A stretch of 64,000 nucleotides of DNA from Octopus sinensis (taxonomy: Eukaryota). The DNA lies in contig NW_021832376.1 of the NCBI RefSeq assembly GCF_006345805.1, positions 42,956 through 106,955 on the forward strand. The letters are read 5' to 3'. Under the pieces are notes generated by a model. That model saw nothing but the letters and a program-made list of their open reading frames with translations, was not told the DNA's origin and did no database searches. This document shows positions 14,977 to 59,970 of the stretch, piece by piece. Both the position numbers and the translations under genes were made by a program. Position 1 is the first letter of the stretch. Every line of letters starts with the position of its first letter.

Positions 14977-15027
<51 letters not shown>
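14609..15027. repeat. Compound (CAT)/(CAC)/(CGT) microsatellite
   Basis: Seen directly; abuts a decayed RTE 3' end. Confidence 0.95.
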
Positions 15028-17229: not shown

Positions 17230-17346
17230 CGAGTAAAAAGTTAAAGAAACATAAAAATTAGTGGATAAAGCGGCAATTAAGTGGAATGTTGGATACGAAA
17301 GTGTGGCTGCGAAAGCCGGCTTCGTTTTTTAAAAAAATGGCAGCGA
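17230..17346 (+). promoter_or_regulatory. Probable INTS5 proximal promoter/5' UTR with a YY1-like AAAATGGCAGC motif over the start codon
   Basis: Unique, CpG-containing sequence between the (GA)n tract and the ATG. The motif resembles the YY1 consensus; the TSS is unknown. Confidence 0.4.
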
Positions 17347-17393
17347 TGACGGCGAATGCTGAGTTGGGTTCCAGCATGAATTTCACCTCTCAG
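17337..17393 (+). CDS. INTS5: INTS5 exon 1 ([19 protein letters not shown])
   Basis: ATG in AAAATGGC context; CAG|GTAAAT donor; phase 0 joins exon 2; CpG-richer surroundings. Weak sequence conservation here. Confidence 0.75.
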
Positions 17394-20300: not shown

Positions 20301-20460
20301 CATTTTGTTAAATAAATAAGTTAACATTATAATATCCTAAAGCTGATAAACCAACTAAATTGTTTCTCCATTTTCTTATTTGTAATATAAATTATATATA
20401 TATATATATATGGTCCAACCCATTGCAACATGAAGCGTGGATGTTAAATGACGCCAATGG

Positions 20461-20492
<32 letters not shown>

Positions 20493-21046
20493 ATATATAT
20501 ATTATATATATATATTCATTCATTCATACTTGTACACACAGGCAATATGTGTACTGACACACACAGGCATCATGTGTACACACTGGCAACATTTATACAT
20601 CCGTACCTACACACACAGGCAAAATGTATACACATTTACACACATGCATCCTGTATACATATGTGTAAGCACAAGGTAACATCTATGTGCACCCGTACAC
20701 ATGCAGACAACACATGTCACATATTCGTACACACACTGACAACACACTCATGCACATACACACAATCAAGTTCTTAGCTCTCCCAACCTCATCAATCACC
20801 ATTCTCCTCTTTCCTTCTGCCAGGACATCCTGAATGAGGTTCGGCATTTTCTACGTGGCACTGTCTATGATGGTAAAGTGAACAAAGAAAGCCTAGCGAA
20901 ATCTGCCTTGTTTCTGCTCCGTACACTCCCGGCTGCCAGGCATGCTGTCCTCGAGCATATGTGTCACGTTTTTGATGAGGCTGTCATGTTACACATTCAG
21001 CAGCTTGAACGTTCAGCATCTGGTATTGGTCCAGAACATATAGGTC

Positions 21047-21083
<37 letters not shown>

Positions 21084-24000
21084 TATGTTTGACTTTTGCT
21101 TTATATTTGTACAGTGAGGGCGCGTGGCTTAGTGGTTAGGGCATTCGGCTCATGATCATAAGGTTGTGAGTTCGATTCCCGGCGACGCGTTGTGTCCTTG
21201 AGCAAGACACTTTATTTCACGTTGCTCCAGTCCACTCAGCTGGCAAAAATGAGTTGTACTTGTATTTCGAAGGGTCAGCCTTGTCACTCTCTGTGTCACG
21301 CTGATTATCCCCGAGAACTACGTTAAGGGTACACGTGTCTGTGGAATGCTCAGCCATTTGCACGTTAATTTCACGAGCAAGCTGTTCCGTTGATCGTATC
21401 AGCTGGGACCCTCGTCGTCGTAACCAGCGGAGTCTTTAAAATATTTGTACAAGTTGGCTCCAAGTCTCACCCAGAGACCTCAAGAGGCAACAGGTTGGAA
21501 GTTCGTATTGTTGTTATGCCTAGTGTGCCATATATTTGGTTTTGTATTTAGTGTTGTACTAGTGAATGCCTGAAAAAAAAAAAAAACAAAACAAAAAACG
21601 AAAGTTATGTTTGCTTTTAAAACTTGAGGTTACATAGAGAGTATTTTGCATAGATTATGAGCAGTTCCCATGAGCACTATCTTTTGAATTTCTGCCATTT
21701 TGGGGTTTCCCGGTATCTGAGTTAGGTAGCGATCAGCCCCTTTTGCTATCATTCCCAGGGCACCTATGACAACAGGTATTGTTTATTATTATTATTATTG
21801 TTATTGTTGTTGTTGTTGTTATTATCATTGAAGGTGGTGAACTGGCAGAATTGTTAGCATGCTGGGTGAAATGCTAAGCAGTATTTCATATACTGTTACA
21901 TTCTGAGTTCAAATTCTGCCAAGGTCAACTTTGCCTTTCTTTCTTTCAGAGTTGATAAATTTAGTACCAGTCACACACTGGGGTCGATGTAATCAACTTA
22001 ATCCCTTCCCCCCAAATTTGAGGCCTTGTGCTTCCAGTAGAAAGGATTATTATTATTATTATTATTATTATTATCATTATAATTTATAAAGATTGATGTA
22101 ACTGATGATGTCATTTTATCTGAAAAGGAACGCAGAATTCATATTTTGAATTTCTGTGTTTCCATGGTTTTATTCATTTTAATTTTGAACACCAGGGGTG
22201 CACCAGTTACATGCATCACAACTAGATGTGCACAACATGGTGACCTCATATCAAGATAAACAGCACATGATTTTGCAGGTTGGGCTCAGCTAGAATTTTC
22301 TTCAAGTTGAATAGCCCATCCTGCCCAAAAGGTCCCTGATGAAATACATCCAGTACACTCTGAAATGGTTGGTATTAGAAATTGCATCCAGCCTTGGAGA
22401 TGAATGCCAAAAATGAAATGTATGAACATCATTCGACCCATGCCAGCATGGAAAACAAATGTTAGATGATGATGATGATGATGATGATGAAACAAGATCT
22501 GGCCCTCTGACTTTTCTAGGAGTCCAGTCTATGTCAACATAGAAAACAGGTGATGACGACGACAATGGTGGTTTAACTAGGCTTACTTATTTTGATCATC
22601 ATCATCATCATCATCGTTTAACGTCCGCTTTCCATGCTAGCATGGGTTGGACGGTTCGATTGGGATCTGGGAAGCCATGGAGGCTGTACCAGGCTCCAGT
22701 CTGATCTGGCAGTGTTTCTACAGCTGGATGCCTTCCTAACGCCAACCACTCCGTGAGTGTAGTGGGTACTTTTTATGTGCCGGGCGAGGCTGGCAACGGC
22801 CACGACCGGTTGGTGCTTTTTACGTGTCACCGGTATGGTTTTACGTGCCACCTGGATCAGTTTTCAGATCAGGTTCATACTCTCTATTAACCACTTCCCA
22901 AGCATGACTTAAAACTCCTTAGCCATTTTGATGATGATGATGATGATGTACCAACCCACCTGAAACTGCCCTTTTTTTTATCTACAAATTGTTTAAAAGC
23001 GATCTAAAAACTTTCCTTCAAAATTTCATGTTAATTATTGTTCCAAATACCAGCTTAGTAATGATGAAGTTATTCTACTAAATTCCTCGTTATTTTCCAA
23101 ATTAATTGAAACAACATCAGTGCATGCTGACAGGAATAGGTTAACAAAAAGGTTAAACTGTCTGAAAAATATAACCAAAAGAAATGTTTGGTTTTTGTTT
23201 TTGCTGTTGTCAACCTTCGAATGTTGGGCCTGATGGAAGCAAAGTGGCTGAGTTCCTTTCAAGTGTTGGGCCTCATGGAGGCAAAGTGGCCAAGCTCCTT
23301 TTGAGTGTTGGGCCTCACGGAGACAAAGTGGCCAAGCTCCTTTTGAGTGTTGGGCCTCACGGAGGCAAAGTGGCCAAGCTCCTTTTGAGTGTTGGGCCTC
23401 ACGGAGGCAAAGTGGCCAAGCTCCTTTTGAGTGTTGGGCCTCACGGAGGCAAAGTGGCCAAGCTCCTTTTGAGTGTTGGGCCTCACAGAGGCAATGACCA
23501 AAACCTTTGGCATTATGTCATGCTTGAGAAGAAGACGCACCAAACCAAGTAAAATTGCAGTCGTGACAGATACCAGTGTCATGCAAATGACACCCGTGTC
23601 AGTGGTACATAAAAGTATCCATTACACTCTCAGAGTTGTTGGTGTTAGGAAGGGCATCCAGCAATAGAAAATCATACAAAAATCAGAGTGGAGCCTGGTG
23701 CAACCTTCCAGCATGCCAGCTCAATCAAACTGTCCAACCCATGCCAGCATGGACAACGGACGTTAAATGATGATGTTGTTTAATAGAACTAAGCATTGAT
23801 CTCTCACACTTTATTACAGACGACAGTGCCCGTAGTCTAGAACCAATCATACAAGATGCTTGCAGTGTCCTTTTAAACTTCATCAAGAGTAACCCAGTGG
23901 CCTGGGCCCCTATCATTTCAGCCGTAAGTGATTTTCTCTTTTTTCTCCTTTTACATTCTGATGAACACCACTTATCTTCTCTCTACAGTAAAATTCAGTT

Positions 24001-26888
24001 TATTCATGATTTCTCATTGTAGATTGTTCTTTTATGTTTAGAGTAAGGAGTATTAATATTAAGTCCTGGGAATATGGGTTCAAATTCAGTCAAGGTTGAC
24101 TTTGCTATTCATCCTTCAGGGTTGATAAAATATGTACCTATTTCTTTATTACCCACAAGGGGCTAAACATAGAGGGGACAAACAAAGACAGACATAGGTA
24201 TTAAGTCGATTACATCGTCCCCAGTGCGTAACTGGTACTTAATTTATCGACCCCTGAAAGGATGAAAGGCAAAGTCGACCTCAGCGGAATTTGAACTCAG
24301 AACGTAACGACAGACGAAATACAGCTATGCATTTCGCCCGGCGTGCTAACGATTCTACCAGCTCGCCGCCTTAATAAAATATGTACCAGTTGAATACTTG
24401 GGTTGATGTAATCAACTTGCCCCTTACCCTGAAGTTGCTGGTCTTGTGCCAATATTTGGAATCCATATCAAGTCTTGGGAAGGCGGCAAGCTGGCAGTGT
24501 TGTTAGTGGAACCAGGCAAAATGCTTTAAAGCATTTGATCTGTCTTTACACTCTGGGTTGATTTTGCCCTTCATCCCTTTGCGGTTAATAAAGTAAGTAC
24601 CAGATGAGCACCGTGGATGTAATCAGCCTACCCCCCACCAATTGCTGGCCTTGTGTTAAAATTTGAAACCAACATTGTCTTGGAGTTGAATGGCTTAACT
24701 ATGTCCTTTCCATCGAAATGGGTTGTTTATACTCTTTCTTTTTCAAATTAGTTAACTTTATCCCTTTCCTCAAAATTGGGTTAACAATACCTATTCCTGT
24801 AAAAGGCCGCAAGCTGGCAGAATCGTTAGCACACTGGGCGAAATGCTTAGCGATATTTCGTCTGCCGTTACGTTCTGAGTTCAAATTCCACCGAGGTCGA
24901 CTTTGCCTTTCAACCTTTCGGGGTCGATAAATTAAGTACCAGTTACTCACTGGGGTTGATGTAATCGACTTAATCCCTTTGTCTGTCCTTGTTTGTCCCT
25001 CTATGTTTAGCCCCTTGTGGGCAATAAAAAAATATATACCCATTCCTGTAGAATTGGGTTATCCATATATACCCTTTTTTTTCAGTATTATCACTACACA
25101 ACTCTCATTTCTCCTCACTGTCACACCATACTTCCTACACACGTACTTCTTTATTACTAATTAAACCAATTAGAAAGCTAATATTAACAATTCTAGAGGC
25201 TGCAAGCTGGCAGAATCGTTAGCATGCTGGGCAAAATGCTTAGCAACATTTCAGTCCATCTTTTATATGTTCTGAACTCAAATTCCACTGAGGTCTACTC
25301 AACAAGTCATCCTTTTAGGGGTCAATACAGTCAACTTCCCTGCTCACTTGAAATTGCTGGCCTTGTGCCAAAATTTGAAACTGATATAATTAATTCTGTC
25401 AGTAATGAACATACTCTCACTAGCTCCAATTATTTTAGTTTGTGATGATGTTTAATTGGAACATTTGTTATTTTTCAATTTCTTTCAGTGGTCACTAGGT
25501 GTTCTCGGTCACATAAGTACAAAATATGCTGACCAGCGCAATTTACCAAGATCCAGCAGTCTCAATGAAGTCCTACAGCTGTGGATGACCTGTCCACCCA
25601 CGAAAACCTTGACCGAAGTGGCAACTGAGTGTTTTGCAGCCATGTAGGTGTTCTTTCTCCTTCTTCTCTACTTTCCTTTGCTACTGACACCATCTCTAAG
25701 ACACCACTTGGCCAGAGGTTTATATTTTAGTTTTCTCCTGGAAAAGAATTAATCCAGTTTTGACTGATTGAAGTAAAAACAATTCTGTTCTCTATTTTAC
25801 AGTTAATTCTTTTCTATTCTAGGCACAAGGCCCGAAATTTTAAGAGAAGGGAGCCAGTCGATTAGATCGAGCCCAGCACGCAACTGGTACTTAATTTATC
25901 GACCCCCCACCCCCCGAAAGGATGAAAGGCAAAGTCGACCTCGGCAGAATTTGAACTCAGAACGTAGCGGCAGACAAAATACTGCTAAGCATTTCGCCCG
26001 GCGTGCTTAACGTTTCTGCCAGCTCGCCGCCTGAGTTCAAATACCACCAAGGTGACTTCACCTTTCATGTTTTTGGGGTTGATAAAATAAGTACCAGTAG
26101 AGCATTGGGGTCAATGTTAAATGACTTACCCCACCCACTCCCGAAACTGCTGGCCTTGTGCTGGAATTTGAAACTAATCTTATGGAAACTTAGTATCATC
26201 TTCTGGGCTGTTGGTCATCATGTATGTTTGTGAAAGTCCCTTTAATCTCAGTAAAGTTCACACACAGTTGACCATCCCCTTCTCCAGTGTGTGGGTGGTG
26301 AGGCTTGGTTATATGGGGTGGCCATTGTCAATAATTCCACTCGTTTGAAATATAATTTCTCTCCTTTTATATTCTAGGGTGAGCAGTGCCCCCGACGTCT
26401 GTGTCGATGCACTACTAGAAGCTTCAGTACAATACTCTCCACACTTTGACTGGTTTGTGGCTCACATTGGGTAAGTCTACCTTAGTTTCCACTCAGATTG
26501 CATTCAATCTGGCCCTTCATGTCTCCTGTTGCCCCCCTCTCTCCATCTCTCTTTCTCTCTACACACACACAGACATATAATCACCGTCATCATTTTAACA
26601 TCATTTTTTTCCCCTATGCTGGCATGAATTCTTGAGGCATCATTCTATTGCAGGATGTCCTTCCTGACACCAACTTTAGTTGTCTTTTAAGTCAGCTGTG
26701 GAACATAGCCACCAAACCTTTTTCTATTTTCTCTCCCTGTTTATTTCTGTGTTCCTTTCTGTCAAAGAGCATAGGCTCGAAACGTAAAAGACTTTCTCAT
26801 TTCCCGAGCTTTGAACTAATACATCTGTTTGTTGTTTACACCACCTGTCTTTGTCTTTTGTTTTTTTGTAAATTCTCATTATATATAA

Positions 26889-26923
<35 letters not shown>

Positions 26924-27203
26924 TTATTTGAGGGAATAAAATCCAAAACTTACAAGGAAAAAAATTCAATTTAGAAATACTATATAAAAAATTAGAAAAA
27001 AACCCACCTTTTATCAATTCAAAATGAACAATTAAATTACATATATAATTATATACGTTTTTATTATTATTTTTTTGCAATTTACTTAATCGTTGACATT
27101 TTATTGTTATTTTAATTTAAATATTTCTATTATATGTAATTTTCTAGATGGTGTAATTTAATTGTTCATTTTGAATTGATAAAAGGTGGTTTTTTTACTA
27201 ATT

Positions 27204-27239
<36 letters not shown>

Positions 27240-30200
27240 AGTGAGTGGATAAATGAAAAAGAATGGTATTCAGTACTTTTGGTAGGAGTTACGTATGCTA
27301 TTTAACACTTTAGCATTTAAACCACCTACCATCTGGCCAAAGTATTCTACCTGTTTTATATTCGAACTGGCCACATCTAGCTTCTCACACCTACCCTACA
27401 ATGCCATTCTGAAAATAACCAGTCACATCATTGAAGTTTCAAAGCTACAACATAAATAAGCATTACAGTTTAAAGAGTGTTATGAATGCTAAAGGGTTGA
27501 TAACAATTTGATTTAGTTCCATGCAACTGAAAGTTTCATAGGTTTGTAAAATGCACCTAGTTCTTCGGGCTTGGGTTCGTTCTGCGAGCCAACAACAAAA
27601 AGTTGCATGGAACTGAATCAAACCGTTTGTTGTGTGCCAATTCTAAAAACTCATAGTTGTAATTACTATAGCTTCTGAAAGATTTCAAATATGTTTTTTT
27701 TTTTTCATCATCATCATCATCGTTTAACATCCGGAAGCCATGGAGGCTGCACCAGGCTCCAGTCTGATCTGGCAGAGTTTCTACAGCTGGAAGCCCTTCC
27801 TAACGCCAACTACTCCGTGAGTGTAGTGGGTGCTATTTTACGTGCCAGGGGAGGCTGGCAGCGGCCACGATCGGTTGGTGCTTTTTATGTGCCACCAGCA
27901 CAGAAGCCAGTCAAGGCGGCACTGGCATCAGCCACGTTCGGATGGTGCTTTTTACGTGCCACCAGCATAGGGGCCAGATGAGACTGGCAAATGGCCACAA
28001 TCGATTGGTGCTTTTTACGTGCCACCGGCACAGAAGTCAGTCAAGGCAGCGCTGGCATCAGCTACATTCAGATGGTGCTTTTTACGTGCACAGGTATCAC
28101 AACTACAATTTCCATTTGATTTTTTATTTTGATGTTGATGTACTTTCTCTCTCATTATTTATTTACAGCTCTTGTTTCCCAATGACCATCATTAGTCGGG
28201 TGTTGATGTGTGGCCTGAAAGATTTCTGCACCCACCGCAGCAAACGGCCATCGAGCGTACAAATGGTGCCGGACAAGAAGATTCCAAAACTGGCTTCAGT
28301 TGTTTGTATCCTTGGTCATCTTGCTTCGAAACACTGCCACAGTATACGGAAGTCTTTGATGAGTTTATTCCAGGTAAGTAGTTGCAACATGAGAAAAAAT
28401 GGCCAACTCAAGCTGTGAATGGATGAAACCTCATTGGTTTTGTACCAATGTCCCTTTTGTTGTTTGTCAGCATCATCATCATCATCATCGTTTAAACTCC
28501 GCTTTCCATGCTAGCATGGGTTGGACGGTTCAACTGGGGTCTGTGAAGCCATGGAGGCTGCACCTGGCCCCAGTCTGATCTGGCAGTGTTTTCTACAGCT
28601 GGATGCCCTTCCTAATGCCAATCACTCCGTGAGTGTAGTGGGTGCTTTTTACGTGCCACCGGCACAGGTGCCAGATGAGGCTGGCAAACGGCCACGATTG
28701 GATGGTGCTTTTTACATGCCACCGGCACGGAAGCCAGTCAGGGCGGCGCTGGCTATGGCCACGTTTGGATGGTTCTCTTACGCACCACCGGCACTGGTAT
28801 CACAGCTACAAATTCCACTGATGTAGCATGTATTGTATTTTTTGAGGGGCGGGGGCCAGTATGGTGCAGATTTGACCTTTGACCTTCTAAGCCAGTATAC
28901 TACCACTTACCCTCAGCCCCTTCTTCTGAAACTGTGTTCTGGGGACATGGATGTCTCCAGATGTCATGGGAAAATATTTTCAGTGAGATTCAGGATTTGA
29001 TGTTTCTCTGGAAGCATTTCTAAATGAGAGAACCTCTATGCTAGAAATAAGAGCTAATTCTTTCAAATTATACCCTACTGTCTTAAATAAAAGAAAGGCG
29101 ATATTGGACAACGTAGTGTTTTTACGATGTTTGTCTAAAGATTAAGGGATGATCACAGCTGTAATTCCTTTGATATATATGCACACCCATGTATATGTGT
29201 GTGTGTGTTTTCCTTGTTTTGATGTTGTTTGTATATTGCATGAAAATAAGATTACAACAATTCATACAGTGATATCATCATTTACTATCTGCTGCAAAAA
29301 CATGCCCGGCCATTGAGCCGTTCAGTGTTAGAAGGACAAAAGGAAATATAACCTAGCTTGGAAATAGGTAAGGGTTGGCAACTGGAAGAGCATCTGATCA
29401 TAGGAAATTTGGTTATTTTCAGTTTGAACGGCAGTTTGTAACATAATTTCTAGGTAACTAAAAAATTTTAAACTTCGTATACTGGTAGAATGTGTTTATA
29501 AAACATCGTTTTCTCTTGGCTTTATTGAGAAAATTCTATAGGTTGTAAGATATTTCGTCTTTAATTTCTTGCATTTCGGCAATTTTAACCAATCAATGAC
29601 GTCTATTGAGGTGAAAACATTCTGTGCCATATGAATATGTCCCTCGTTTAAGAAACAGATTGGGTTTATTTACATTTGTGAAGAAAAAAAGATACCCTTC
29701 CCCCACCCCTAACCCTAACCCTAACCCTAAAAGAGATTGAAATGCAATAGATCGATACTAGGGTCATAATTATGGGTGACAATTTCATGTGACACTGCTA
29801 GAGAAAATGGCAGTTTTTTCTAGCGGTGTCACATGAAATTGTCACCCATAATTATGACCCTAGAATCGATCTATTGCATTTCAATCTGTTTTAGATTTAG
29901 GGTTAGTTAAGGTTAGTTAGGGTTAGGGGTAGGGGAAGGGTATCTTTTTTTCTTCACAAATGTAAATAAACCCAATTTGTTTCTTAAATGAGGGACATAT
30001 TCATACGGCACAGAATGTTGTTTACCACAATGGACATATTTGATTGGTTAAAATTGCCGAAATGCAAGAAATTAAAGACGAAATATGTTACAAACTATAA
30101 AATTTTCTCAGTAAAGCCAAGAGAAAAAGATGTTTTATAAACACATTCTACCAGTATACGAAGTTTAAAATTTTTTAGTTACCTAGAAATTATGTTAAAA

Positions 30201-33200
30201 ACTGCCATTCAAACCGAAAAGACCCAGAAATTTTTCTCAATAAGTTTGTCCAACCCATGTTAACTTGACGTGTGTGTAAGTGAGAGAGAGAGAATCTTAA
30301 TGAGATCCAGTTCTTACTCATGTGTTTCATGTATGTTTTCAATATATCTACAGAACTGTTGGTAAGGTATAATAGTTTCTGTGACCTATATATATTTCTA
30401 TCTTTCTACAGGATAGCTTCCAGCCTGGTGCTAACATGTTGACACGACCAACGTTACCATTTCTCCTACAGCTGGCCTCTATGTCTCCGATGCTTCTTCA
30501 TATTCTCACCACAGATCTGGTGAAGACATGTAAGTCTTGATGGTTTTCTTCCCATTTACTGATCAATCGGAGAATCATGTGACTACACAAGGCTTTCTCT
30601 TGCACCCACTTTACACTCTTTCATATCATCTCACTATTCTCTCCCCCTCTCTCTCTCTATATATATATATATATCATCTCACTATTCTCTCTCTCTCTAT
30701 ATATATATATATAAAAGTGAAGTTGTGTGTCTGTCTCCTACGATTTAGATTCCTAACTACTCCCACATTTTGCGGTGCAGTTTAACCAAAACCGGGTATC
30801 TTATAGTTGTGATTCATATCGAGCCCTTCTGGGTATTAGCGCGCGTCTACGATGAGTCTACGATTTAAAAAAAAATTTACCATCATTTTTTTCCATTTTA
30901 ATGCATTTTTTCGCTACTATATAAGGGAAGTAACTCTCTAAAAATGTCTACGATGAGTCAACGATTTAAAAAAAAATTATTTATCATCATTTTTTTTCCA
31001 TTTTTAATGCATTTTTTTGCTATTTTTTGGCTATAACTCTCTAAAAATGCTTATATAGTTATTTCCCTTATAAACCCGAGCAACGCCGGGCGATACTGCT
31101 AATTTTATATATATATAATAATATAATATAATGAAATTATTGTATGTGTATATTTAGGGCTAAAAGACCACTATGTGGACAGCCATATGCTAGAAGTAGA
31201 TCACATACGCTCTAACTACAAAGAAAGAATGTTCTCCAGAGAAAATTCAGCCAACACCAGAACATAGGTGGGCAAGACAGATGAAAATTATATAAAAATC
31301 AGGAATTAATCGTATACTGGTTTCATCTATCACCGAATAAATTACATACGTAATCCTTTGTCCATAGAACTCATCAGTACGATCGTTCCAAAAACAATAT
31401 AATTTGCAAAACTAAACACCAGTTTTCTCTATAAAACTGGACATGTATATGTGTATGTATGTACAATTATATGTATTGTTACATATATATGTTTGCATGT
31501 ATGCATCTATGCACTGTGTATGTAAATGTGTGAGCAATTTTATGTATGTGTGTAGATATATGAGAGAGAATGTGTGAATTGTATGTATGTAGGTAGATAT
31601 ACGAGAGAGACTATGAATTGTATGTATGTAGGTAGATATACGAGAGAGACTATGAATTGTATGTATGTAGGTAGATATACGAGAGAGACTATGAATTGTA
31701 TGTATGTAGGTAGATATACGAGAGAGACTATGAATTGTATGTATGTAGGTAGATATACGAGAGAGACTATGAATTGTATGTATGTAGGTAGATATACGAG
31801 AGACTATGAATTGTATGTATGTAGGTAGATATACGAGAGAGACTATGAATTGTATGTATGTAGGTAGATATACGAGAGAGACTATGAATTGTATGTATGT
31901 AGGTAGATATACGAGAGAGACTATGAATTGTATGTATGTAGGTAGATATACGAGAGAGACTATGAATTGTATGTATGTAGGTAGATATACGAGAGAGACT
32001 ATGAATTGTATGTATGTAGGTAGATATACGAGAGAGACTATGAATTGTATGTATGTAGGTATAAGAGAGTATCTATGTTTTCGTGCGTGTGTATATTTGT
32101 ATGCATGTATATGTGTTTTTGTTTGTTCCTTCTTGAGCCATGCTTGGCTCATAAGGGCCAGTTTCCCCAGTTTTATTGGCGTATAGGTTCCCCACTTGGA
32201 TGGGACGCCGGTCCATCGCAGGTGAGCTGCAAGATGCAGGAAGAAAGAGTGAGAGAAAGTTGTGGCGAAAGAGTCAGCAGAAGTTTCGCCATTACCTTCT
32301 GCCGGAGCCATGTGGAGCTTAGGTGTTTCTCTCATAAACATACGCATCACCCGGTCTGTGATTCGAACCCGCGATCTCTCGACCGTGAGTCCGCTGCTCT
32401 AACCTATTTCTTTATTACCCACAAGGGGCTAAACACAGAGGGGACAAACAAGGACAGACATAGGTATTAAGTCGATTACATCGACCCCAGTGCGTAACTG
32501 GTACTTAATTTATCGACCCCCGAAAGGATGAAAGGCAAAGTCGACCTCGGCGGAATTTGAACTCACAACGTAACGGCAGACGAAATACCGCTAAGCATTT
32601 CGCCCGGCGTGCTAACGTTTCTGCCAGCTCGCCGCTGCTCTAACCACTAGGCCATGTGCCTCCACTATGTATACGTGTATGCACATGCAGCTAAATGTTC
32701 CTCCATCCACCTGATTCTCTCTTTCCTCCCATGTTAAACAGTTCTTACTGGTGTGTCTCTTCTCTTCTCTCGCAGTGTCTCCAACAGTCCTCAACAACCT
32801 TCATTCACAGTTTATTCCATGGAAATCTGCCAACAAGTCTGAATTCGACAAGTAAGTCTCTGTCACTTTGTCTGTCTCTATCCTCATTACTCTCTCTCTT
32901 TTTACTCTTTTACTTGTTTCAGTCATTTGACTGTGGCCATGCTGGAGCATCGCCTTTAGTCGACCAAATCGACCCCAGGACTTATGCTTTGTAAGCCTAG
33001 TACTTATTCTATCGGTCTCTTTTGCCAAACCGCTAAGTTACGGGGACGTAAACACACCAGCATCGGTTGTCAAGTGATGTTGGTGGGGACAAACACACAC
33101 ACACACACATACACACACATACTTACATACATACACACATATACATATATACGACGGACTTCTTTCTGTTTCCATCTACCAAATCCACTCACAAGGAATT

Positions 33201-33635
33201 GGTTGGCCCCAGGATATAGCAGAAGACACTTGCCCAAGGTGCCACGCAGTGGGACTGAACCCGGGGCCATGTGGATCATAAGCAAGCTACTTACCACACA
33301 GCCACTCCTAATTTTACCATTGTCAATATCTTCATCATTTATATCGTCAAGCTCAGTACTAATGTACTTAGTATAATGGTTATCTTTTCTCTGTTTCAGT
33401 CACTAGGCTGTGGCCATGCTGGGGCACTGCCTTGAATAATTTTTATTTGAAAGAATCGACCCCAGGATTTAATTTATATTTCTAACTCTGGTACTTATTC
33501 TATTGGTCCCTTTTGCCTAACTGCTAAGTTACAGGAATGTAAACACACTAACACTGGTTGTCAAGCAGTGGTGCGGGACAAACACAGACACAAAGACACA
33601 CACACATAGCTATATGTGTCTATATACATACATAA

Positions 33636-33672
<37 letters not shown>

Positions 33673-36600
33673 CATAAATATATATATATATACACACACA
33701 CATACATACATACATACATACATGACGTTAAATGATGATGATGATGATGATGTGTATATATATGTATACATACACACACACATGCACAATGGGCTTTGGT
33801 CAGTCTGAGATTATAGTAGAGGACACTTGCCCAAAGTGCCATGCAGTGGGACTGAACCCAGAACCATGTGGTTGGGAAGCAAACGTCTTACCACACAGCC
33901 ATGCCTCCACCCATGAAAAGTATCAAAAATTAAAATATTTGTAATTAAAATTACACCTATGGTGATGAGAAAGAATCATTAGTTTAATTATAAATTCTGG
34001 TCAAATAATGCAGGGGAGACAATCTTGAAATTAAAAATCTTGAAATTAAAAATCTAGTGTATTTTAACATGTATAACGAACCCTTTTTTGTCAAAAATTA
34101 GGTTAAAAAAATACGGGAGTTTCTTATACATGACTAGTATTATAATCCCTTACAAAACCTTTTTTTCAAATTTTAAACCCCAAAAATTAGGGGATTCCTT
34201 ATACACTTTAACATACAGTAATTCAGATTCCATTGTAATGTGAATGGGAGTTGTATGTGTTAAACATCTCCGATTGACAAGGGAGTGTTAATCACTGAGT
34301 AAATAAAGTGTTACACTGCAAACCTAGTGCTCACGAGTTCACATCCATTGTGGACAGTACGTAATTGTAGCTGTTACATTTTCTCTAGCTGTGGGAAGAG
34401 GATTTGTTAAATCTGTAAATATTGCTTGTAGATTTTTGTTCTATTCTCTGATTGTGCCAGCTCTTTCCATTCACTACCATTCATCATCATTTGATCATCA
34501 TCGTTTAACGTTCGCTTTCCATGCTAGCATGGGTTGGACGATTTGACTGAGGTCTGGCGAACCAGACTCCAATCTGATCTGGCAGAGTTTCTACAGCTGG
34601 ATGCCCTTCCTAACGCCAACCACTCCGTGAGTGTAGTGGGTGCTTTTACATGCCACCGGCACGAGGGCCAGTTAAGGTGGTACTGGCAGCGGCCACGCTC
34701 AAATGGTGCTTTTTATGTACCACCTGCACAGGAGCCAGTCCAGCGGCACTGGCAACGACCTCGCTACGAATGTTTTTCACGTGCCACCAGCACAAGTGCT
34801 AGTAAGGTGACGCAGGTAACAATCATGCTCGAATGGTGTTTTTTACATGCCACCGTCACAAAGGCCAGCTTGTTGCTCTGGCAACAATCTCACTCGTATG
34901 GTACTCTTAGCGCCCCACTAGCAACGGATGCCAGTCACCTAGTTTGATTTCGATTTCACCTGCCTCAACAGGTCTATTAAAACACTGTGTATGCAATTGA
35001 AATAGCATTAAATTATAATTGCCATCTGCATATCATACTCAATGTATATACATCATTAGAAGGCATGATTCTGTGGAATTGCTTGAAATAAAACCTCCTT
35101 GTAGCTTTATTGTGTTAAAACAAAAACCACATGATTCCAGCTTCAGTCCCACTGCATGACATCTTGGGCAAGTATTTTCTACTATAGCCATGGGTTGACC
35201 AAAACCTTGTAAGTTGATTTGATAGACAAAAACTGAAAGAATACCATCTGCCAGCATGGAAAGCAGATGTTAAATGATGATAATGGTGATGATGATGTCC
35301 TATAGATTTTCCGTATGTATAGTATATCTACCACTTGAACTGTTTATATTAACCGTATGCCGTTTGCTGTTTTCAGTTTCCTTCAGCTTGTGATCCACTT
35401 GATCATGAAAAGTGATGTTGGTGCTTACCAAGTCATAGAATTCCTTCTCAACTCAGCCTCTCCACTCTCCCCCAAGCATCAAGGTAATGTCTTCTTCGTT
35501 TCTACTTTCTACAAGACCAAGGGATAAACTTGGCCTAACACTGCTGATGTCTCAACAACTCAGCAATTGTTCTTAATCTGCCGTCCAAAAATACTTTGTC
35601 AGGATATTAATATATATATGTGTGGATATGCACATGTTGTTGGAGCAAATGTTTCAATCTTGATTTTGTGAAGTGTGAGTGAGACTGCAATGTATTGAGT
35701 TATGCTCATCATCATCGTTTAACGTCCGCTTTTCATGCTAGCATGGGTTGGACGATTTGACTGAGGGCTGGCAAACCGGATGGCTGCACCAGGCTCCAGT
35801 CTGATCTGGAACAGTTTCTACACAACATGACCAATGAGAAAGCAGAAAAGCCATTGCTCTCATCAGGATGAACTATCAACCCTTTCAACCTAATCTTCTT
35901 AATCTTCTATATTTGGAATGTGGTTGTTTTTTTAATTTGCTTGTTTAATCCTTCGTCAGCTGGAATCATAATGGATGAGCTATACATTCCTTTGCATTTG
36001 TACAATTTGGAGCCTCATTAAATCCAAGACCAAGTTTCCCAATGGCTGCTGTCCCTTGATGTTTTAAATCCCCTTCAGCGTTGGTTGGATGCAGAAAATG
36101 AGCAATGAGTAATTCAATAGGACCTCTTCTACTTGGTCAGGGCTGTTTTGTTCTCTTGCTTCAAGAAGACAACTTTTTGGAGTTCAGAACACAGATGATT
36201 CTAGAAAATTAGACAACAACAACAACAGTTAGCTTCTATGATAAAAACACCATCATTCCTACCACCACCACAACCATCAATAAATACATACTGAGACAGC
36301 TAGGCAAGTCATCATTTGGGCACTAACCTAAGAAAAGAGACTGTATGTGCCCTGCCAAAGCACAATCAAGACTCTGATATAGAACAATGGTTCTGCAGCT
36401 GTTGCTGAACTTAACACATGGGAGATGAAATGCCCAGTACCAATGCAAGTTGTCAAAAACTGGTGGTGATACTCAATTAAAATTTTGTCCGTTTGTTTAC
36501 AGGGGCTATGGAAGAGGAAACCTGCTGTAATGAGGTACAACAAGTCTGTAAATATTTCCTGGTAAGTCAATTCTCTCTTCATTGTTCTAAATACCATTTT

Positions 36601-39600
36601 TATTTCTATCTCTTGACTGAAAGTTCAGTTCGCATTCCTTAGAATTGCAGTTGACTTCTCAGCCAACCGAGACAATCCCAGTTTTTACCCTTAGCTACGA
36701 TTATGTCATTTCATTGCTGTTTCATGATGTTGTGTTATGATTCTATTGCTGGGACGTGTATTGTTTTAATATTGTTCTTATACAGTTGTCGTCCTGTTAC
36801 TACTGTTTTGCATTCACAGCAGATCTTTCCTATGAAACCCAGTTTTACTAACATTGTTCTTTGGTCACTAAGGTCTTGTTAAACTTTGTAGATAATCTTA
36901 TTCTGTATTTCATAAGCTTCTTGCCTTCCTTTTGTGGAGTTTCTGCAGATATTCATTTGAGTATATGTAGACTAGTGTACATACAGACAGACTGACACTC
37001 TGTCAAGGATACTGATATACGCATATGGACCACTGTACTCTCAAGCCAACTGGTGTATATAAACTAATGTACACTCATGGTTAAATGAGTATACCCACAG
37101 ATAGTCAAATGTACATACATGTAGACCAGTATACTTCCAGATGGATCAGTAGACTCCCAAACAGACGAGTGTACTCTGAAGTAGACCTGAGTACACACTG
37201 AGAAACTAGTGTGCTCAGTTATGATATATTAGATTTAAGAAGTACAGTGATGAAGTACAACATCAAAATAAATATCAAATAGAAATAGTAGTTGTGATAC
37301 CTGTGCCAGCGGCATGTAAAAAGCACCATCTGAACGTGGCCGATGCCAGCGCCACCTTGACTGGCTTCTGTGCCAGTGACACGTAAAAAGCACCAACTGA
37401 TCGTGGCTGCTGCTAGCCTCCCCTGGCACCTGTGCTGGTGGCACATAAAAAGCACCCACTACACTCACGGAGTGGTTGGTGTTCGGAAGGGCATCCAGCT
37501 GTAGAAACACTGCCAGATCAGACTGGAGCCTGGTGCTGCCTCCTGGCTTCCCAGACCCTGGTTGAACTGTCCAACCCATGCCAGCATGGAGAACGGACGT
37601 TAAATGATGATGATGATGATGATGATGATGAAGTACAGAGAGTACGTAAGTGGTTTGTCTTATTGTCTTGAAGTCATTAACTATTTTAGCTTCACCCAGT
37701 TATCTTCATATCTCAGGCAGCAGTAGGGGTTAGTGGGTGGGTACTGCCCTTCCATTTCATATCAATAAATAAATATAAACATTTTTTTATTTAAATACAA
37801 TACATAAGCCAGAATTTAAAACTCTTGTAAAACCACAGTATGTATTTATTGATGGTGATGGTGGTGGTAGGAATGATGGTGTTTTTCTCACCGAAGCTAA
37901 CTATTGTTGTTGTTGTTGTTGTCTAATTTTCTAGAATCATCTGTGTTCTGAACTCCAAAAAGTTGTCTTCTTGAAGCAAGAGAACAAAATCATGGAAGTC
38001 CCCCTGTTGAATTCCCTGTCCAAGTGTCAGGCTGCTTTGGCAAGAGATTTTCTCAACAGTACAGGTCAAAGGTCAGTTGTGATATAGACATGTGATTTAT
38101 TGTTGTGTGTGATTGCAGTTGTTGCTATGTTGCCCCAGGTTGGCCCTGATCGAAAAGCTCAGTGATGTCGTTGTCGTGTAACACCAGGCCAGTTCTGATC
38201 TAGCAGACATATGGCATATAGTAATTGATTAAACAATTCCAACCCCGCTTTGCTTGCGAAGACCTGTTGGGGCAAGTGAAATCGAAATCGAAATTGAACC
38301 AATCCTATGACTGGCACCCGGCAGATGCCAGGACCCCTGGACTGGTGGTACGTAAAAAGCACTATCCGAATCGTGGCCGATGCCAGTGCCGCCTCGACTG
38401 GCTTCCGTGCCGGTGGCACGTAAAATACACCAATCCAACCGTGGCCGTTGCCAGCCTCGCCTGGCACCTGTGCAGGTGGCACGTAAAAAGCACCCACTAC
38501 ACTCTTGGAGTGGTTGGCGTTAGGAAGGGCATCCAGCTGTAGAAACTCTGCCAGATCAGACTGGAGCCTGGTGCAGCCATCTGGCTTCCCAGATCCCTGG
38601 TCGAACCGTCCAACCCATGCTAGCATGGAGAACGGACGTTAAACGATGATGATGATGATGAATTCCGTTCTACAGACTCAGGACTCCAGACTTACTGTGC
38701 ATATGCCTACATAATGGCTACTCTGTCAAATTCCACATTGAAGACCACACTATATACTCCAGAGTAAGGACTACATTGTACACTTCACAATGAGTACTAC
38801 ACTATACTCTCCATAGTGTAGACTAAACTCTATGCATCCGCACTACTGTGCATGCTACAGTGAGACCACACTGTGCACTGCAGCATGCAATGGTTTATAA
38901 TGTTATAATATTGAAGAAAGGTGCAGTGTGGTTGTCTGTGAGTTACAATTCCTTTTAGTTCTTCAGGGTCGATTAAATAAGTACCAGTTACACACTGGGG
39001 TCGATGTAATCGGCTTAATCCCTTTGTCTGTCCTTGTTTGCCCTCTCTGTGTTTAGCCCCCTTTGGGCAATAAAGAACAAAATGATAAAAAGCACCCAGT
39101 CCACTCTGTAAAGTAGTTGATGTTAGGAAAGGCATCCAGCCAAAGGAACCATGCCAAAGCAGACAGCAGAGCTTGGTGCAGTCTTCTGACTTACCAGTTC
39201 CTGTGGAATCATCCAACCCATGCCAGCATAGAAAATGGATGTTAACTACAGAATCAAGAGTTTATACATAAGTGCAAGAAAGAAATTTGCTTAAGGGATG
39301 CAAACCCAGTTATATAAAGTAAGGACAGTCTTAATTGTTTATTATATGCTTCCTGTGAAAATGTCTGTGTTGAGCAATCAGGCCTCTTTCTATGATTTCA
39401 TTGATCCTTATCTTGTTAGTCATGAATTTTTTTCCTCTTCAATTCCAGGAGTGAATGGTACCTGAAACTGTTGACCTGTACAGCATTATATGGATGTTCC
39501 AAAGGGACTTGTGAATCTCTCGCGGTTCTCTTGGTTGAGGCTAAACAACCATCTCAGGTAAACTTCTACTTAACACCCTATGTGGCCACAACTACCCACC

Positions 39601-49129: not shown

Positions 49130-52100
49130 TCACCACCACCACTATTACTACTACTACTACCACCACCACCACTACTACCACCACCACCACCACCACCACC
49201 ACTACTACTACTACATACTAATCAACTCTTTCTGCTATTTGCCACAGGAACAGATCTCCCGTAATCGACAGAGTTTGCTTGACGTGCTGTGGACGTGCAG
49301 CTACAGACGTCTCCCACCCTCCACAGACATTCGTCAGAAACAGAACTCAATGCCGCTAACTGGCGTCGACCGAATCTCTTCCAGCTTGTCACGACAGATT
49401 GCTGCAACCCTTGTTGCGCAGCTCACACCAGACATGTTGTACAATGGACCAGCATGGCCCGACGAGGAGTTCATTAAGGTCACAGTTGAAAGGTTAGAAC
49501 CCCCTTTTTTTTTTTGTATTTTCAGATGTTATCCCTTTTTACTGCCAGAACCTACCATTTGGACCAGTTTACTGCTTACCCACGGGTTCACCACAAGGCT
49601 TCCTGAATGTTGATCTAAGTTCTTTCAGTCTTTCACTTTTCCTTTCTGTGTGTGTGTGTGTGTAATATTGTCATTTACTGTCTATTTTCCATGCTGGCAT
49701 GGGTTGGATAGTTCAACAGGAACTGGTGACCCAGGGGACTGCACCAATCTCGAATGTCTGCTTTGGTATAGTTTCTATGGCTAGATGCCCTTCCTAACAC
49801 CAACCACTTTACAGAGTGTATTAGGTTTTTTTTTTTTTTACATGGTACTGGCACTAGAGAGGTCACCAAGTGACCTGCATTACAAGACCCTCAACTGAAA
49901 AGATCTGAGACCATACGGACTTTGAAGAAAAGACACCTGTGAAATTGTAGTTAAGACACCTGTGCCGGTGACACGTAAAAAGCACCATCCGAATGTGGTA
50001 GATGCCTGCGCCGCCTGACTGGCGTCCGTGTCGGTTGACAGGTAAAAGCAACAACTGATCGTGGCAGTTTTCCAGCCTCCTCTGGCCCCTGTGCCAGTGG
50101 CACATAAAAAGCACCCACTACACTCACGGAGTGGTTGGCATTAGGAAGGGCATCCAGCTGTAGAAATACTGCCAGATCAGACTGGAGCCTGATGCAGCGT
50201 CCATAGCTTCCCAGACCCCGATCGAACCGTCCAACCCATGCTAGCATGGAAAATGGACGTTAAACGATGATGATGATGATGAGGATGATGATATTGGGAG
50301 CGTGTATGTTTATATCTAAAGGTATGAGTGTATATTTGTGAGTGTACCTGTAGATACCTGTGGGCTTCAATGTGTGTGTGTGTTTGTGAGTATATGTGTG
50401 TGTAAGAGAGAGACAGATAGAGAGAGAATGTCCATAGGCATGTGTGTGTGTATATCCGAATATGTGTAATCAAGATTGGAGCCTGGTGCGGCCATCTGGT
50501 TAGCCAGTCTTCAGTCAAATCGTCCAACCCATGCTAGCATGGAAAGCGGACGTTAAACGACGACGACGATGATGATATATATGTGTGTTAATATGTCTAG
50601 GTATATATGTGTTTGTAAGAGCATATACAGGTATAAGTGTGTGTGTGTGTGTGCTTCTGTGAGTATGCCTGCATGTGTGCATGCATGAAAGAGTATGGCT
50701 GTGTGCGTGTGTGTGTGAATATACCTATAGACATATGTGTGTGTGTGTCCGTCCATAACCAAGACATTTGTACGTTTGTGTGTCTGTATGTGAGTTATGT
50801 CTGAGTGTAGGTATGAGTGGGAGTGAAGAGCAGGTGGTGGAGTTGCTCAGAAACAGGACAACAGCACAGATATATCTGAATCAATTTATTTGTAAGCCTC
50901 CTGTGCTATCAGTCCGTCAGCTGATAGCTACAATGGAAAGTAATGTTTGTCTATTAATATCACTATTGAAATTGTGTTTGTTGTGGGTTGGTGGAAATAC
51001 TGACTGAGACAAAGTGAATAATAAATGAAAGCTTCATATTTGTATTTGCTTTGCAAGATTATGATATGAATTCATGCATTGAAACAAATCTTGTTCTGGG
51101 AGGGTCATTGCACCAATAATAACACATGTACTGATTCAATATTGCTTTGAGACCGCGACCTGTGTTGCATCGCAGGTCGCGGTCTCAAAGCGATGAAAAT
51201 GTTTTGGTAAATTAAATTTAAATGTTGAAGTGAATCTAACGGTTTTTGTGTGTTTCTTAAATGGCTTATAAACACCTTCCACGCTGCAATTGATAATTCA
51301 ACTGTTGATACTGAATTCCGTTCATGTTGATGTGTAACCATGGCTATATATGTTCATGTTGGTACTTAATCCTAGCTCTGTGTTTTCATATCAATACTTA
51401 CCTGTGGTCATGTGTTCATGACGATGCTTAATCCTAGCCCCATGTGTTGTTCATTTTTAACCTTGATACATGTTTGTATTGTTTCAGAGACCTCTGGGTT
51501 TGGAGGAAATTTGAAGACAACCCGATTCTCTGGGATATTCTTGATAACTTTGCACACAGTAAGTTAGAACAAGTATTTTATTTACTCTGAATCCCTTCTC
51601 TCTGTCTGTCTGTCACTTTTGCACCTATCACACCTGTATTTTCTCACAATCACCTAGCCACTTCTCTCCTCTAAAAGTATTTCTACATGCCACTGTAGAT
51701 TTTGTCTTAACTCAACTGGTATGCAGTACACCTAAGCCTTTTACAGGTTACACCCTCATAATTAACCTGTTACAGTGTTATTTCTTTACTGCCCACAAGG
51801 GGCTAAACAATAGAGGGGACAAACAAGAACAGACAAACGGATTAAGTTGATTACATCGACCCCAGTGCTTGACTGGTACTTATTTAATCGACCCCGAAAG
51901 GATGAAAGGCAAAGTCGACTTCGGCGGAATTTGAACTCAGAACGTAGTGGCAGATGAAATACCGCTAAGCATTTCGCCCGGCGTGCTAATGATTCTGCCC
52001 GCTCGCCGCCTTGGAAACCTGTTACAGTGTGTCACATTACTTGTTACTGTGTGTCAGCCTGTGACTATGTCAGCTTGTTGCAGTGAGTCAGGCAGCTTGT

Positions 52101-58100: not shown

Positions 58101-58658
58101 TTTACTTCCTATGTCTGTCACACCTAACGTCTTCTAATTATATTTCTTTGGTCTATCACACAGGTAACTTACCATCACTGGAACTATTTACTCACTGAAT
58201 AATAGTATTAGTGGTTGAGTATTCCACAGACACTTGCACCCTTAGTATAAGCATCAGACAAAGCCACCAGCATGATTCTAACGGAGTTGGTGCTATGAAT
58301 TATAAAGATATCTAATGAGCTTCTATGCATTTTCTGCCTCTCCAGTTTAACTCACAAGCTTTGGGTCACTTTTCTCAGCAGTATGATGCTGTACAAGTAA
58401 ACTTAAATTGCAAAACAAACTAGCTTCACCATATGGCCTTAAGTATAGAGTAGCCAGCCTCACCTGGCCTCCGTGCCGATGGCACATAAAAAGCACCCAC
58501 TACACTCACGGAGTGGTTGGCATTAGGAAGGGCATCCAGCTGTAGAAACACTGCCAGATATGACTGGCCTGGTGCAGCCTTCTGGCTTCCCAGACCCCAG
58601 TTGAACCGTCCAACCCATGCTAGCATGGAAAGCGGACATTAAATGATGATGATGATGA

Positions 58659-58702
<44 letters not shown>

Positions 58703-58815
58703 CATCATCATCATCATCATTTAGTGTCCGTTTTCCATGCTAGCATGGGTTGGACGGTTTAATTGGGGTCTGTGAAGCCGGAAGGCTTCGTCAGGCCCAG
58801 TCAGATTTGGCAGTG

Positions 58816-58851
<36 letters not shown>

Positions 58852-59938: not shown

Positions 59939-59970
<32 letters not shown>

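Follow-up and report, generated by a model that had tools for sequence, protein, structure and literature searches.

An inverted copy of the INTS5 intron 10/exon 11 junction in intron 9 of Octopus sinensis, probably a lineage-specific templated insertion

Intron 9 of the INTS5 gene of Octopus sinensis carries a 148-nt inverted copy of the intron 10/exon 11 junction located further downstream in the same gene, and the orthologous site in both Octopus vulgaris and Octopus bimaculoides is without this copy. The replacement of 15 nt by an inverted copy, together with a CTG microhomology, represents the signature of a template switch or of templated repair, while the absence of the copy from two sister species gives it the appearance of a recent copying accident rather than of an evolved switch. 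In our assessment this left arm is likely to have arisen as a templated inverted insertion specific to the lineage, i.e., a mutational by-product that would make a generic long double-stranded RNA. The analysis covered a 64,000-nt stretch of DNA, hereafter the window, to which the O. sinensis sequence GCA_006345805.1 (contig VCDQ01000284.1) is 100% identical; GCA_951406725.2 (O. vulgaris) and GCA_001194135.2 (O. bimaculoides) served as comparison genomes, and the arm allele is known from one O. sinensis assembly.

The host gene is a full-length INTS5 orthologue, as indicated by a Pfam match to the INTS5_N domain (E = 4e-16) and by the GT-AG gene model, which reproduces exactly a 990-residue protein bearing the name integrator complex subunit 5 and identical to XP_029655254.2 (O. 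sinensis) and CAI9716921.1 (O. vulgaris). Octopus INTS5 was found by an exhaustive representative protein search, and a word-indexed protein search with an exon 10-11 peptide and an exon 2 peptide returned no octopus INTS5. The first 55 nt of exon 11, containing 21 adenosines, are the same in O. sinensis, O. vulgaris and O. bimaculoides. The exon numbering and lengths given in an initial annotation of this DNA (59 nt for exon 10, 196 nt for exons 10 and 11 together) are correct, as is its statement that skipping of exon 10, or of exons 10 and 11, causes a frameshift, both products being out of frame by the gene model.

BLAST likewise confirmed the coordinates of the inverted copy in that annotation: the 148-nt segment 36146-36293 corresponds, as reverse complement, to the 154-nt segment 37836-37989 (E = 9e-62). 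The arms are spaced 1.54 kb apart on the same chromosome and have sharp ends, with no homology past them by BLAST; the left arm is situated 209 nt upstream of the exon 10 acceptor, and the right arm has an orthologue in all three Octopus species. Five substitutions and one 6-nt indel distinguish the arms: the earlier description of a diverged intronic part with a 6-nt indel thus stands, while its count of about six substitutions is reduced to five. All mismatches are confined to the purely intronic distal part, and the perfect zone of 82 nt joins the 55 exonic nt to the acceptor AG and 27 nt of intron 10, so that the perfection extends beyond the exon. The arms were previously described as unique gene sequence belonging to no repeat family, and this is borne out, since the sole match of each arm within the 64-kb window is the other arm and their flanks are single-copy; nearby SINE-like repeats occur in the window in dozens of copies. 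An Rfam scan of 35000-39000 returned no match.

Table 1. Positions of the INTS5 features, the two arms and neighbouring elements, numbered within the window
Feature	Position	Strand	Remarks
INTS5 coding region	17286..63000	+	22 coding exons, 990 aa; unique GT-AG model
INTS5 coding exon 10	36503..36561	+	59 nt; between the arms
INTS5 coding exon 11	37935..38071	+	137 nt; acceptor TAG/AAT
Left arm, antisense templated copy (probable) of the intron 10/exon 11 junction	36146..36293	-	O. sinensis only, three species compared
Right arm, source	37836..37989	+	final 99 nt of intron 10 and initial 55 nt of exon 11
Perfect 82-nt zone	36146..36227		pairs with 37908-37989; 100% identity
Arm substitutions	left 36237, 36238, 36242, 36271, 36272; right 37892, 37891, 37887, 37858, 37857
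Arm indel, 6 nt	right 37903-37908		(TTG)n microsatellite tract
Left-junction single G	36145..36145	+	matches neither the ancestral target nor the source (A)
CTG microhomology, right (return) junction	36291..36293	+	end of copied tract and ancestral flank CTGAGACAG
Intron 10 3' splice signals inside the predicted duplex	37897..37934	+
Candidate branch point CTAAC	37897-37901		predicted from the consensus only
(TTG)n/pyrimidine tract, then acceptor TAG	TAG at 37932-37934
Antisense SINE fragment, intron 9	35706..35822	-	contiguous alignment with O. vulgaris
SINE-like element, intron 10, within the loop	37282..37631	+	about 330 nt; (GAT)n tail

O. vulgaris and O. bimaculoides have in common an empty site, GGGCT-ACAGGTYGCTGGAYT-CTGAGACAG, in which the 15-nt ACAGGTYGCTGGAYT is given as the same in both species, although two positions are stated to differ. 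In O. sinensis the 15 nt of ACAGGTYGCTGGAYT are swapped for a G and the inverted copy, the G being apparently either untemplated or a first-base copying error. The right junction has 3 nt (CTG) of microhomology, the left junction 0-2 nt plus the one unexplained G. As is characteristic of template switches, the insert has its reverse complement close by on the same chromosome and, with polarisation by outgroups, replaces an ancestral fragment in one event; the short range and short tract of such events are not found here, the copied tract measuring ~146 nt and the distance 1.5 kb.

In the proposed event, which would have accompanied replication or the repair of a break, the end of a nascent DNA strand would leave intron 9, copy ~146 nt of the opposite strand at the intron 10/exon 11 junction 1.5 kb downstream, and return through the 3-nt CTG microhomology, with replacement of 15 ancestral nucleotides. 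Expressed in the four-point model, fragment 1->4 would give way to the reverse complement of fragment 2->3. An identical footprint would be expected of templated repair of the polymerase-theta or MMBIR type. The analysis shows the repeat, the gene model, the ancestral empty site, how the junctions are built, the divergence at the neutral rate and the potential to fold; the exact DNA mechanism, as well as all RNA-level effects discussed below, are matters that we infer. Inserts made by polymerase theta are usually tens of nucleotides long.

The arm resembles the template-switch mutations of Loytynoja & Goldman 2017 (PMC5453318) in the one-step, outgroup-polarised replacement by a nearby reverse complement and in the instant perfect stem that it would give in the transcript, but its tract and distance are much larger than those of short local events, and its stem, unlike a small hairpin, takes in coding sequence and a splice junction. 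The four-point model is restricted to local switch-and-return, long-range switches falling outside it (PMC5453318); that the tract and distance of the arm exceed such short-range events counts against the proposed origin, as does the occurrence of clear microhomology at one junction only. Template-switch mutations give rise to hairpins in RNA and to de novo miRNA stems (PMC8794818, PMC10710096). With polymerase-theta end joining and FoSTeS/MMBIR (PMC2621351) the arm shares a deletion with a nearby-templated insertion, microhomology at one junction, a possible untemplated base and errors clustered in the copied tract, although the enzyme or pathway cannot be read from its sequence. A further likeness is to the origin of plant MIRNA genes by inverted duplication (PMC3237417), in which the copy of a gene fragment makes a perfectly complementary hairpin and then decays; unlike these, the arm is a copy in cis, intronic and in the same transcript.

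Four substitutions in 148 nt (2.7%) separate the left arm from its inferred source. When the arm substitutions are polarised, four are specific to the left arm and one (A>C at 37892) to the right arm of O. sinensis, the left arm keeping the ancestral state at this position. The noncoding (neutral) rate specific to the sinensis branch is 2.0% over 18,276 sites at the locus, corresponding to a whole-branch expectation of 3.0 substitutions in 148 nt versus the 4 observed, and with a divergence of 2.7% against 2.0% the arm shows no sign of constraint. Statistically, nothing is unusual about the perfect exon-derived part (P about 0.16-0.33): Fisher's test on its sparing gives P = 0.16, the placement of the left-arm changes P = 0.16-0.25, and the Poisson zero class P = 0.33 for the lack of changes. 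Selection on the exon-complementary part was considered and rejected, all a-priori tests being non-significant; the initial annotation had itself cautioned that 0/55 versus about 6/93 differences are too few to demonstrate it. Just the post-hoc boundary that sets the 82-nt perfect zone against 5 changes in the distal 66 nt yields a low value (Fisher P = 0.016). If all four left-arm substitutions occurred after the insertion, the 82-bp perfect zone becomes mildly unexpected (P about 0.11) and the arm must have persisted for about the whole sinensis branch, which would count against the proposed reading and would not be expected of a strongly deleterious element.

Minimum-free-energy folds of 1.9 kb and 4.2 kb of pre-mRNA pair the arms over 143 bp (-238 kcal/mol for the arm duplex) and bracket exon 10, in keeping with the ~150-bp stem suggested earlier. 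Besides 55 nt of exon 11, the predicted duplex takes in the candidate branch point, polypyrimidine tract and acceptor AG; the left arm is an intronic sequence complementary to an exon and, by these folds, able to form a duplex with it. The position of the arms on either side of exon 10 suits exon looping by inverted repeats, and the right arm also lies over the exon 11 acceptor. In the exon 11 part, 15 of the 21 adenosines would recode if edited. In O. sinensis pre-mRNA this near-perfect duplex would loop out exon 10 and bury the 3' splice signals, and, when formed, it may act as a long intronic inverted repeat, inviting promiscuous ADAR hyper-editing of both arms and delaying or losing some productive splicing, a load that the essential gene would tolerate. 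Such hyper-editing with mild splice interference is plausible on the folding model. Formation by the arm of a cryptic poison exon is unlikely: the acceptor-like position 36166 scores 6.7 versus 6.3-16.1 for real acceptors, while the best donor (36227) scores 3.3 versus at least 6.2.

The collections searched contain a single O. sinensis assembly, and junction-region ORF look-ups in read-level assemblies gave no match, the exact products of 36328-36597 (-), 36105-36212 (+) and 37923-38069 (-) retrieving no independent read-level contigs; these points favour an assembly artefact, in which a chimeric or palindromic long read put a spurious inverted segment into the contig. An artefactual copy would, however, equal its source, whereas 5 sites and one indel set the arms apart, and the segment, short and internal, is a clean replacement of 15 nt. 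Furthermore, the left arm is ancestral at 37892 and has four changes of its own, which marks a real historical event and makes an assembly chimera extremely unlikely. The microsatellite in the left arm, (TGT)5, matches the right arm of O. bimaculoides and not the TAT(TGT)n of the right arms in O. sinensis and in O. vulgaris, thus hinting at a pre-TAT origin or incomplete lineage sorting, as would fit an ancestral arm that was lost from O. vulgaris and O. bimaculoides by independent deletion or by sorting. Yet microsatellite length is prone to homoplasy, no shared derived state dates the left arm before the bimaculoides split, and two independent deletions would need the same 15-nt filler (2 positions differ), so that ancestral presence is very unlikely; the templated insertion that we prefer can account for the (TGT)5 only through homoplasy of the microsatellite, slippage during copying or incomplete lineage sorting. 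Capture or transduction of the gene fragment by a transposon, in the style of a Helitron, Pack-MULE or LINE transduction, would suit a SINE-dense locus, but the arm is without target-site duplication, terminal inverted repeats, poly(A) or attached transposon sequence, and the 15-nt deletion, the microhomology and the single-copy flanks are found instead, rendering this origin exceedingly improbable. Both ancestral presence with loss and transposon capture were rejected on the junction anatomy and the empty site common to both species.

The initial annotation had proposed an evolved editing-complementary or splice-masking arm with NMD-linked control of INTS5, to be sought as retention and compensatory changes at the orthologous locus. 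With the arm missing in two congeners, divergence at the neutral rate and a non-significant exon/intron contrast, the evidence lends no support to a conserved editing or NMD switch; the arm belongs to one lineage and is not retained in relatives, largely the private and neutrally decaying state that the annotation itself had named as refuting its proposal. The arm may alternatively have been newly co-opted in O. sinensis, with ADAR recoding exon 11 and editing or hiding the acceptor and skipping-NMD tuning INTS5. The very stable predicted duplex over all 3' splice signals and 21 exonic adenosines would agree with this, as would the post-hoc contrast at the 82-nt boundary and a persistence for possibly much of the sinensis branch; coleoids, moreover, are heavy editors, and what introns contribute to their substrates has largely gone unexplored (PMC8891338). 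Like the ADAR ECSs of GluA2 Q/R and Drosophila Syt1 (PMC5705066), the arm is intronic and exon-complementary, with a potential duplex that must act before splicing. Conservation together with the editing site and a short, imperfect helix characterise known ECSs, whereas the arm is species-specific, missing from two species with an identical start of exon 11, and its exon-containing part is a perfect 82-bp helix; it also lies in an upstream intron, across an intervening exon. ADARs edit long perfect duplexes promiscuously, and site-selective recoding typically uses a short imperfect helix; from the perfect 82-bp helix promiscuous rather than selective editing is predicted. Octopus A-to-I editing is found mostly in introns and 3'UTR hairpins, with splice sites very rarely altered (PMC9699675), and some cephalopod substrates, at least, need no intron (PMC7192619). 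One mutational event accounts for the whole anatomy, O. vulgaris has the identical protein without the arm, and co-option is considered unlikely. A literature search found no paper naming INTS5 together with octopus.

Being young, species-specific and unconstrained, the arm probably does not matter as an Integrator regulator, and its value is that of a natural experiment on the birth of an exon-complementary sequence. It represents a clean, dated case in which a large templated inverted insertion is predicted to place a 143-bp intron-exon duplex over the acceptor of an essential gene. O. vulgaris, with identical exon and protein and without the arm, provides the other half of a with/without experiment; that a single template-switch event made a full-length exon-complementary sequence for INTS5 exon 11, with O. 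sinensis and O. vulgaris as the natural pair, we put forward only tentatively. The case permits testing of how exon-complementary ADAR substrates originate and how often recoding results in coleoids, and of the amount of long-range secondary structure that a splice site can bear in vivo. Species-specific A-to-I recoding of the first 55 nt of exon 11 in O. sinensis (e.g., N>D/S, K>E/R or Q>R) or altered exon 10/11 splicing would, if it occurs, be direct evidence of how DNA copying errors give birth to new coleoid recoding substrates, which are then filtered.

Inverted intronic SINE or Alu pairs cause hyper-editing, exon looping, skipping and back-splicing. The arms share with such pairs a predicted long near-perfect intramolecular dsRNA bracketing an exon (octopus context in PMC9699675), and differ from them in being unique gene sequence, one arm holding a splice acceptor and coding sequence. 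In octopus, circRNAs are reported to be generally low (PMC9699675). The locus also contains reverse-transcriptase fragments and dense SINEs. Among ~18 species-specific indels of at least 30 nt at the locus, the left arm is the only unique local inverted copy, the others being mostly SINE/TE copies. The SINE-like element within the loop is common to O. vulgaris and missing in O. bimaculoides. In the 4.2-kb fold, the antisense SINE fragment of intron 9 pairs over 109 bp with a sense SINE in intron 11 (38538-38655), forming an outer inverted repeat inside which the arm pair is nested.

An open reading frame at 20740-21114 carries a Pfam INTS5_N match (E = 4e-16), and when the exon 2 peptide was searched exhaustively, the 990-residue protein P0002 (XP_029655254.2, Octopus sinensis integrator complex subunit 5) was retrieved at 99% identity; CAI9716921.1 of O. 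vulgaris is identical to P0002. On the window, P0002 is encoded on the plus strand by 22 coding exons that span 17286-63000, and it is reproduced exactly by one unique GT-AG model, according to which the initial annotation had correctly given the exon numbers and lengths, the TAG acceptor and the frameshifts expected from skipping exon 10 or exons 10 and 11. The exons of INTS5 bear 8 sinensis-specific and 19 vulgaris-specific substitutions, the two proteins being nonetheless identical, and purifying selection on the gene is very strong.

Coordinates of the two arms of the inverted repeat and of the neighbouring INTS5 exons (window positions)
Feature	Position	Strand	Basis or location
INTS5 exon 9	35377-35483	+	GT-AG model
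Left arm	36146-36293		in intron 9; exon 10 lies 209 nt downstream
INTS5 exon 10, 59 nt	36503-36561	+	GT-AG model
Right arm	37836-37989		last 99 nt of intron 10 and first 55 nt of exon 11
INTS5 exon 11, 137 nt	37935-38071	+	GT-AG model
INTS5 exon 12	39449-39557	+	GT-AG model

The 148 nt of the left arm are the reverse complement of the 154 nt of the right arm (E = 9e-62); direct reading, a repeat finder, global alignment and self-BLAST agree on this, confirming in every detail the inverted repeat first described. Both arms are sharp-ended, similarity stopping at their ends. Complementarity is 100% over the first 82 nt (36146-36227 and 37908-37989), a zone which includes the 55 exonic nucleotides already noted as perfect and which, since it runs 27 nt into the intron, is not limited to the exon. 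The distal 66 nt of the left arm differ from the right arm by five substitutions (left positions 36237, 36238, 36242, 36271 and 36272), while a single 6-nt indel between the arms lies within a (TTG)n microsatellite. Self-BLAST returned no further match to either arm in the 64-kb window, in line with the earlier view that the arms are unique sequence rather than a repeat family; the adjacent SINE-like elements (~330 nt) occur there in dozens of copies with 70-92% identity.

P0002 was placed by exact-product look-up on two assemblies, i.e., those of O. sinensis (GCA_006345805.1), whose contig VCDQ01000284.1 corresponds to window positions 15286-64000 at 100% identity, and O. vulgaris (GCA_951406725.2), and a third locus was obtained from O. 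bimaculoides (GCA_001194135.2) via the orthologue P0119 (XP_014790496.2). Alignment of the O. vulgaris and O. bimaculoides loci with the window is interrupted, in each case, exactly at the left arm, and the sole match to the left-arm sequence in either locus is the right-arm orthologue. The site reads ...CAGGGCT-ACAGGT(T/C)GCTGGA(C/T)T-CTGAGACAGCTAGG... in these two species, with 15 nt and no arm, and ...CAGGGCT-G-[TTTTGTTCTC...AATACATACTG]-AGACAGCTAGG in O. sinensis, where one G and the inverted copy, whose final CTG is common to the ancestral flank, stand in place of the 15 ancestral nucleotides. Since the same empty site is found in two species and two independent assemblies, the left arm is derived rather than ancestral, having been inserted in the lineage of O. 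sinensis.

Polarisation with O. vulgaris and O. bimaculoides as outgroups makes four substitutions private to the left arm: 36238 (G>A), 36242 (G>T) and the doublet 36271-36272 (T>C, C>A). The O. sinensis right arm has one of its own, 37892 (A>C), a position at which the left arm retains the complement of the ancestral A. An assembly chimera was considered, as the arm is known from one O. sinensis assembly and no independent read-level contigs carrying the allele were found; the asymmetry of the polarised changes, four in the left arm and one in the right, shows a real historical copy instead.

The DNA mechanism is read from the footprint of the insertion. A short ancestral fragment was exchanged for a reverse-complement copy of sequence close by; microhomology marks the return junction and a single unexplained base the other, and neither a target-site duplication nor terminal repeats nor poly(A) is present. 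On this footprint the left arm would be a template-switch mutation, or templated inverted insertion, from which the transcript gains an inverted repeat. Template switches are known to give rise to RNA hairpins de novo, miRNA stems among them (PMC8794818, PMC10710096). Because the copied tract, at ~146 nt, and its 1.5-kb distance both exceed the short-range events of the four-point template-switch model, templated repair of the FoSTeS/MMBIR or polymerase-theta type is an equally good label (PMC2621351). The other species-specific indels of at least 30 nt at the locus are mostly insertions of SINEs or other multi-copy repeats, or short local direct repeats, and a few are without any further match in the locus.

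Counted over the 18,276 noncoding positions of the locus that could be aligned, lineage-specific substitution rates were 2.0% for sinensis, 2.5% for vulgaris and 6.1% for bimaculoides plus the internal branch, a local divergence seemingly high for the published split of 2.5 My (PMC10700109). Over the whole sinensis branch, a neutral 148-nt insert is expected to gain 3.0 substitutions, versus the 4 observed, so that the insertion is either old in the sinensis lineage and neutral, or younger, with some changes (notably the doublet) being copying errors of the event itself; no constraint is visible under either scenario. Sparing of the exon-derived part was non-significant by Fisher's test (0/55 versus 5/93, P = 0.16), as were the location of all left-arm changes outside the 55 exon-derived nucleotides (P = 0.16, or 0.25 with the doublet counted once) and the lack of changes over the full branch in these 55 nt (P = 0.33) or in the 82-bp zone (P = 0.11), while P = 0.016 was obtained with a boundary picked post hoc, on data already seen.

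Within the microsatellite (37903-37923 versus 36213-36227), the left arm carries (TGT)5, an exact match to the O. bimaculoides right-arm orthologue, while the right arm reads TAT(TGT)6 in O. sinensis and TAT(TGT)5 in O. vulgaris. Owing to this common (TGT)5 state, a gapless 110-nt alignment of the left arm with the O. bimaculoides source shows 98% identity; slippage during copying, later microsatellite homoplasy or incomplete lineage sorting may account for it.

Possible effects on the RNA were derived from structure prediction combined with established ADAR and splicing biology. The isolated arms are predicted to form a duplex of -238 kcal/mol, and the stem proposed initially was recovered on folding, the arms pairing over 143 bp in the minimum free energy structure of 36100-38040 and in full when 4.2 kb spanning exons 9 to 12 were folded. 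In the latter structure, the arm pair is enclosed by an outer inverted repeat of 109 bp, whose halves are an antisense SINE fragment (35706-35822, intron 9) and a SINE in sense orientation (38538-38655, intron 11). Both stretches show an unbroken alignment to O. vulgaris, so that looping of the exon 10-11 region would be older than the arm and would exist in O. vulgaris too. The antisense fragment is 81-91% complementary to this sense SINE and to another in intron 10 (37500-37616).

Within the predicted duplex lie the acceptor AG, the pyrimidine tract and a candidate branch point (CTAAC, 37897), together with 55 nt of exon 11. These 55 nt contain 21 adenosines, and of the A>G changes possible there 15 are nonsynonymous. 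Being so long and perfect, such a helix is a substrate of promiscuous hyper-editing and not of selective recoding. In vivo, the duplex would depend on intron 9 persisting until transcription reaches the right arm, 1.5 kb further on. For at least some squid substrates no intron is required (PMC7192619), and it is acknowledged that the part played by introns in coleoid substrates has been largely ignored (PMC8891338).

In the orientation of the gene, the inverted exon copy (36146-36168) contains a pyrimidine-rich acceptor-like site, TTTTGTTCTCTTGCTTCAAG/AAG, whose score of 6.7 ranks with the lowest of the real sites, and the branch-point complement (36225-36233) yields a weak donor-like GTTAGC. 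With the latter scoring 3.3, under all real donors, a 62-nt cryptic exon arising from the arm is conceivable but unlikely.

The initial annotation had interpreted the arms as an editing-complementary or splice-masking duplex with NMD-linked control, a proposal that finds partial support only. The potential for a duplex is real, but the arm is a lineage-specific mutational product without detectable constraint. Retention in relatives was not borne out, the arm being missing in O. vulgaris and O. bimaculoides, and this covers most of what that annotation had listed as counting against its proposal. Furthermore, O. vulgaris, the sister species that lacks the arm, encodes an identical exon and protein. 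The arm may represent a newborn exon-complementary sequence with O. sinensis-specific effects on editing or splicing; if so, such effects would be directly comparable with O. vulgaris.

Several other elements were observed. A SINE copy in intron 10 (37282-37631) is also present in O. vulgaris and not in O. bimaculoides, having been inserted along the vulgaris/sinensis stem. In the intron that separates exons 17 and 18, 49552-51194 (34267-35909 of the O. sinensis contig locus, L002) comprises 1.6 kb with SINE copies inside, versus 3 nt in O. vulgaris, and would be either a sinensis-specific insertion or a vulgaris deletion. A 3.2-kb minisatellite at 1-3166 (39-nt unit rich in TCA/ATC, ~82 copies, 89% matches) is open in several reading frames, and a second, 420-nt (ATC)n array lies at 14607-15027. 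Upstream of INTS5, a reverse-transcriptase fragment at 7808-8323 (+; Pfam RVT_1, E = 2e-19), adjoined by open reading frames at 5443-6015 (-) and 8582-9097 (+), is a decayed retroelement. Further low-copy local inverted repeats or palindromes with 89-96% identity in INTS5 introns (17808-17901/18148-18242, 41069-41131/41280-41342, 29405-30233 and 56422-56716) may be MITE-like elements or more template-switch products. An 84-nt direct repeat (54436-54519 and 55074-55157, 95% identity, starts 638 nt apart) is contained entirely in intron 20, shortly before exon 21 begins at 55180.
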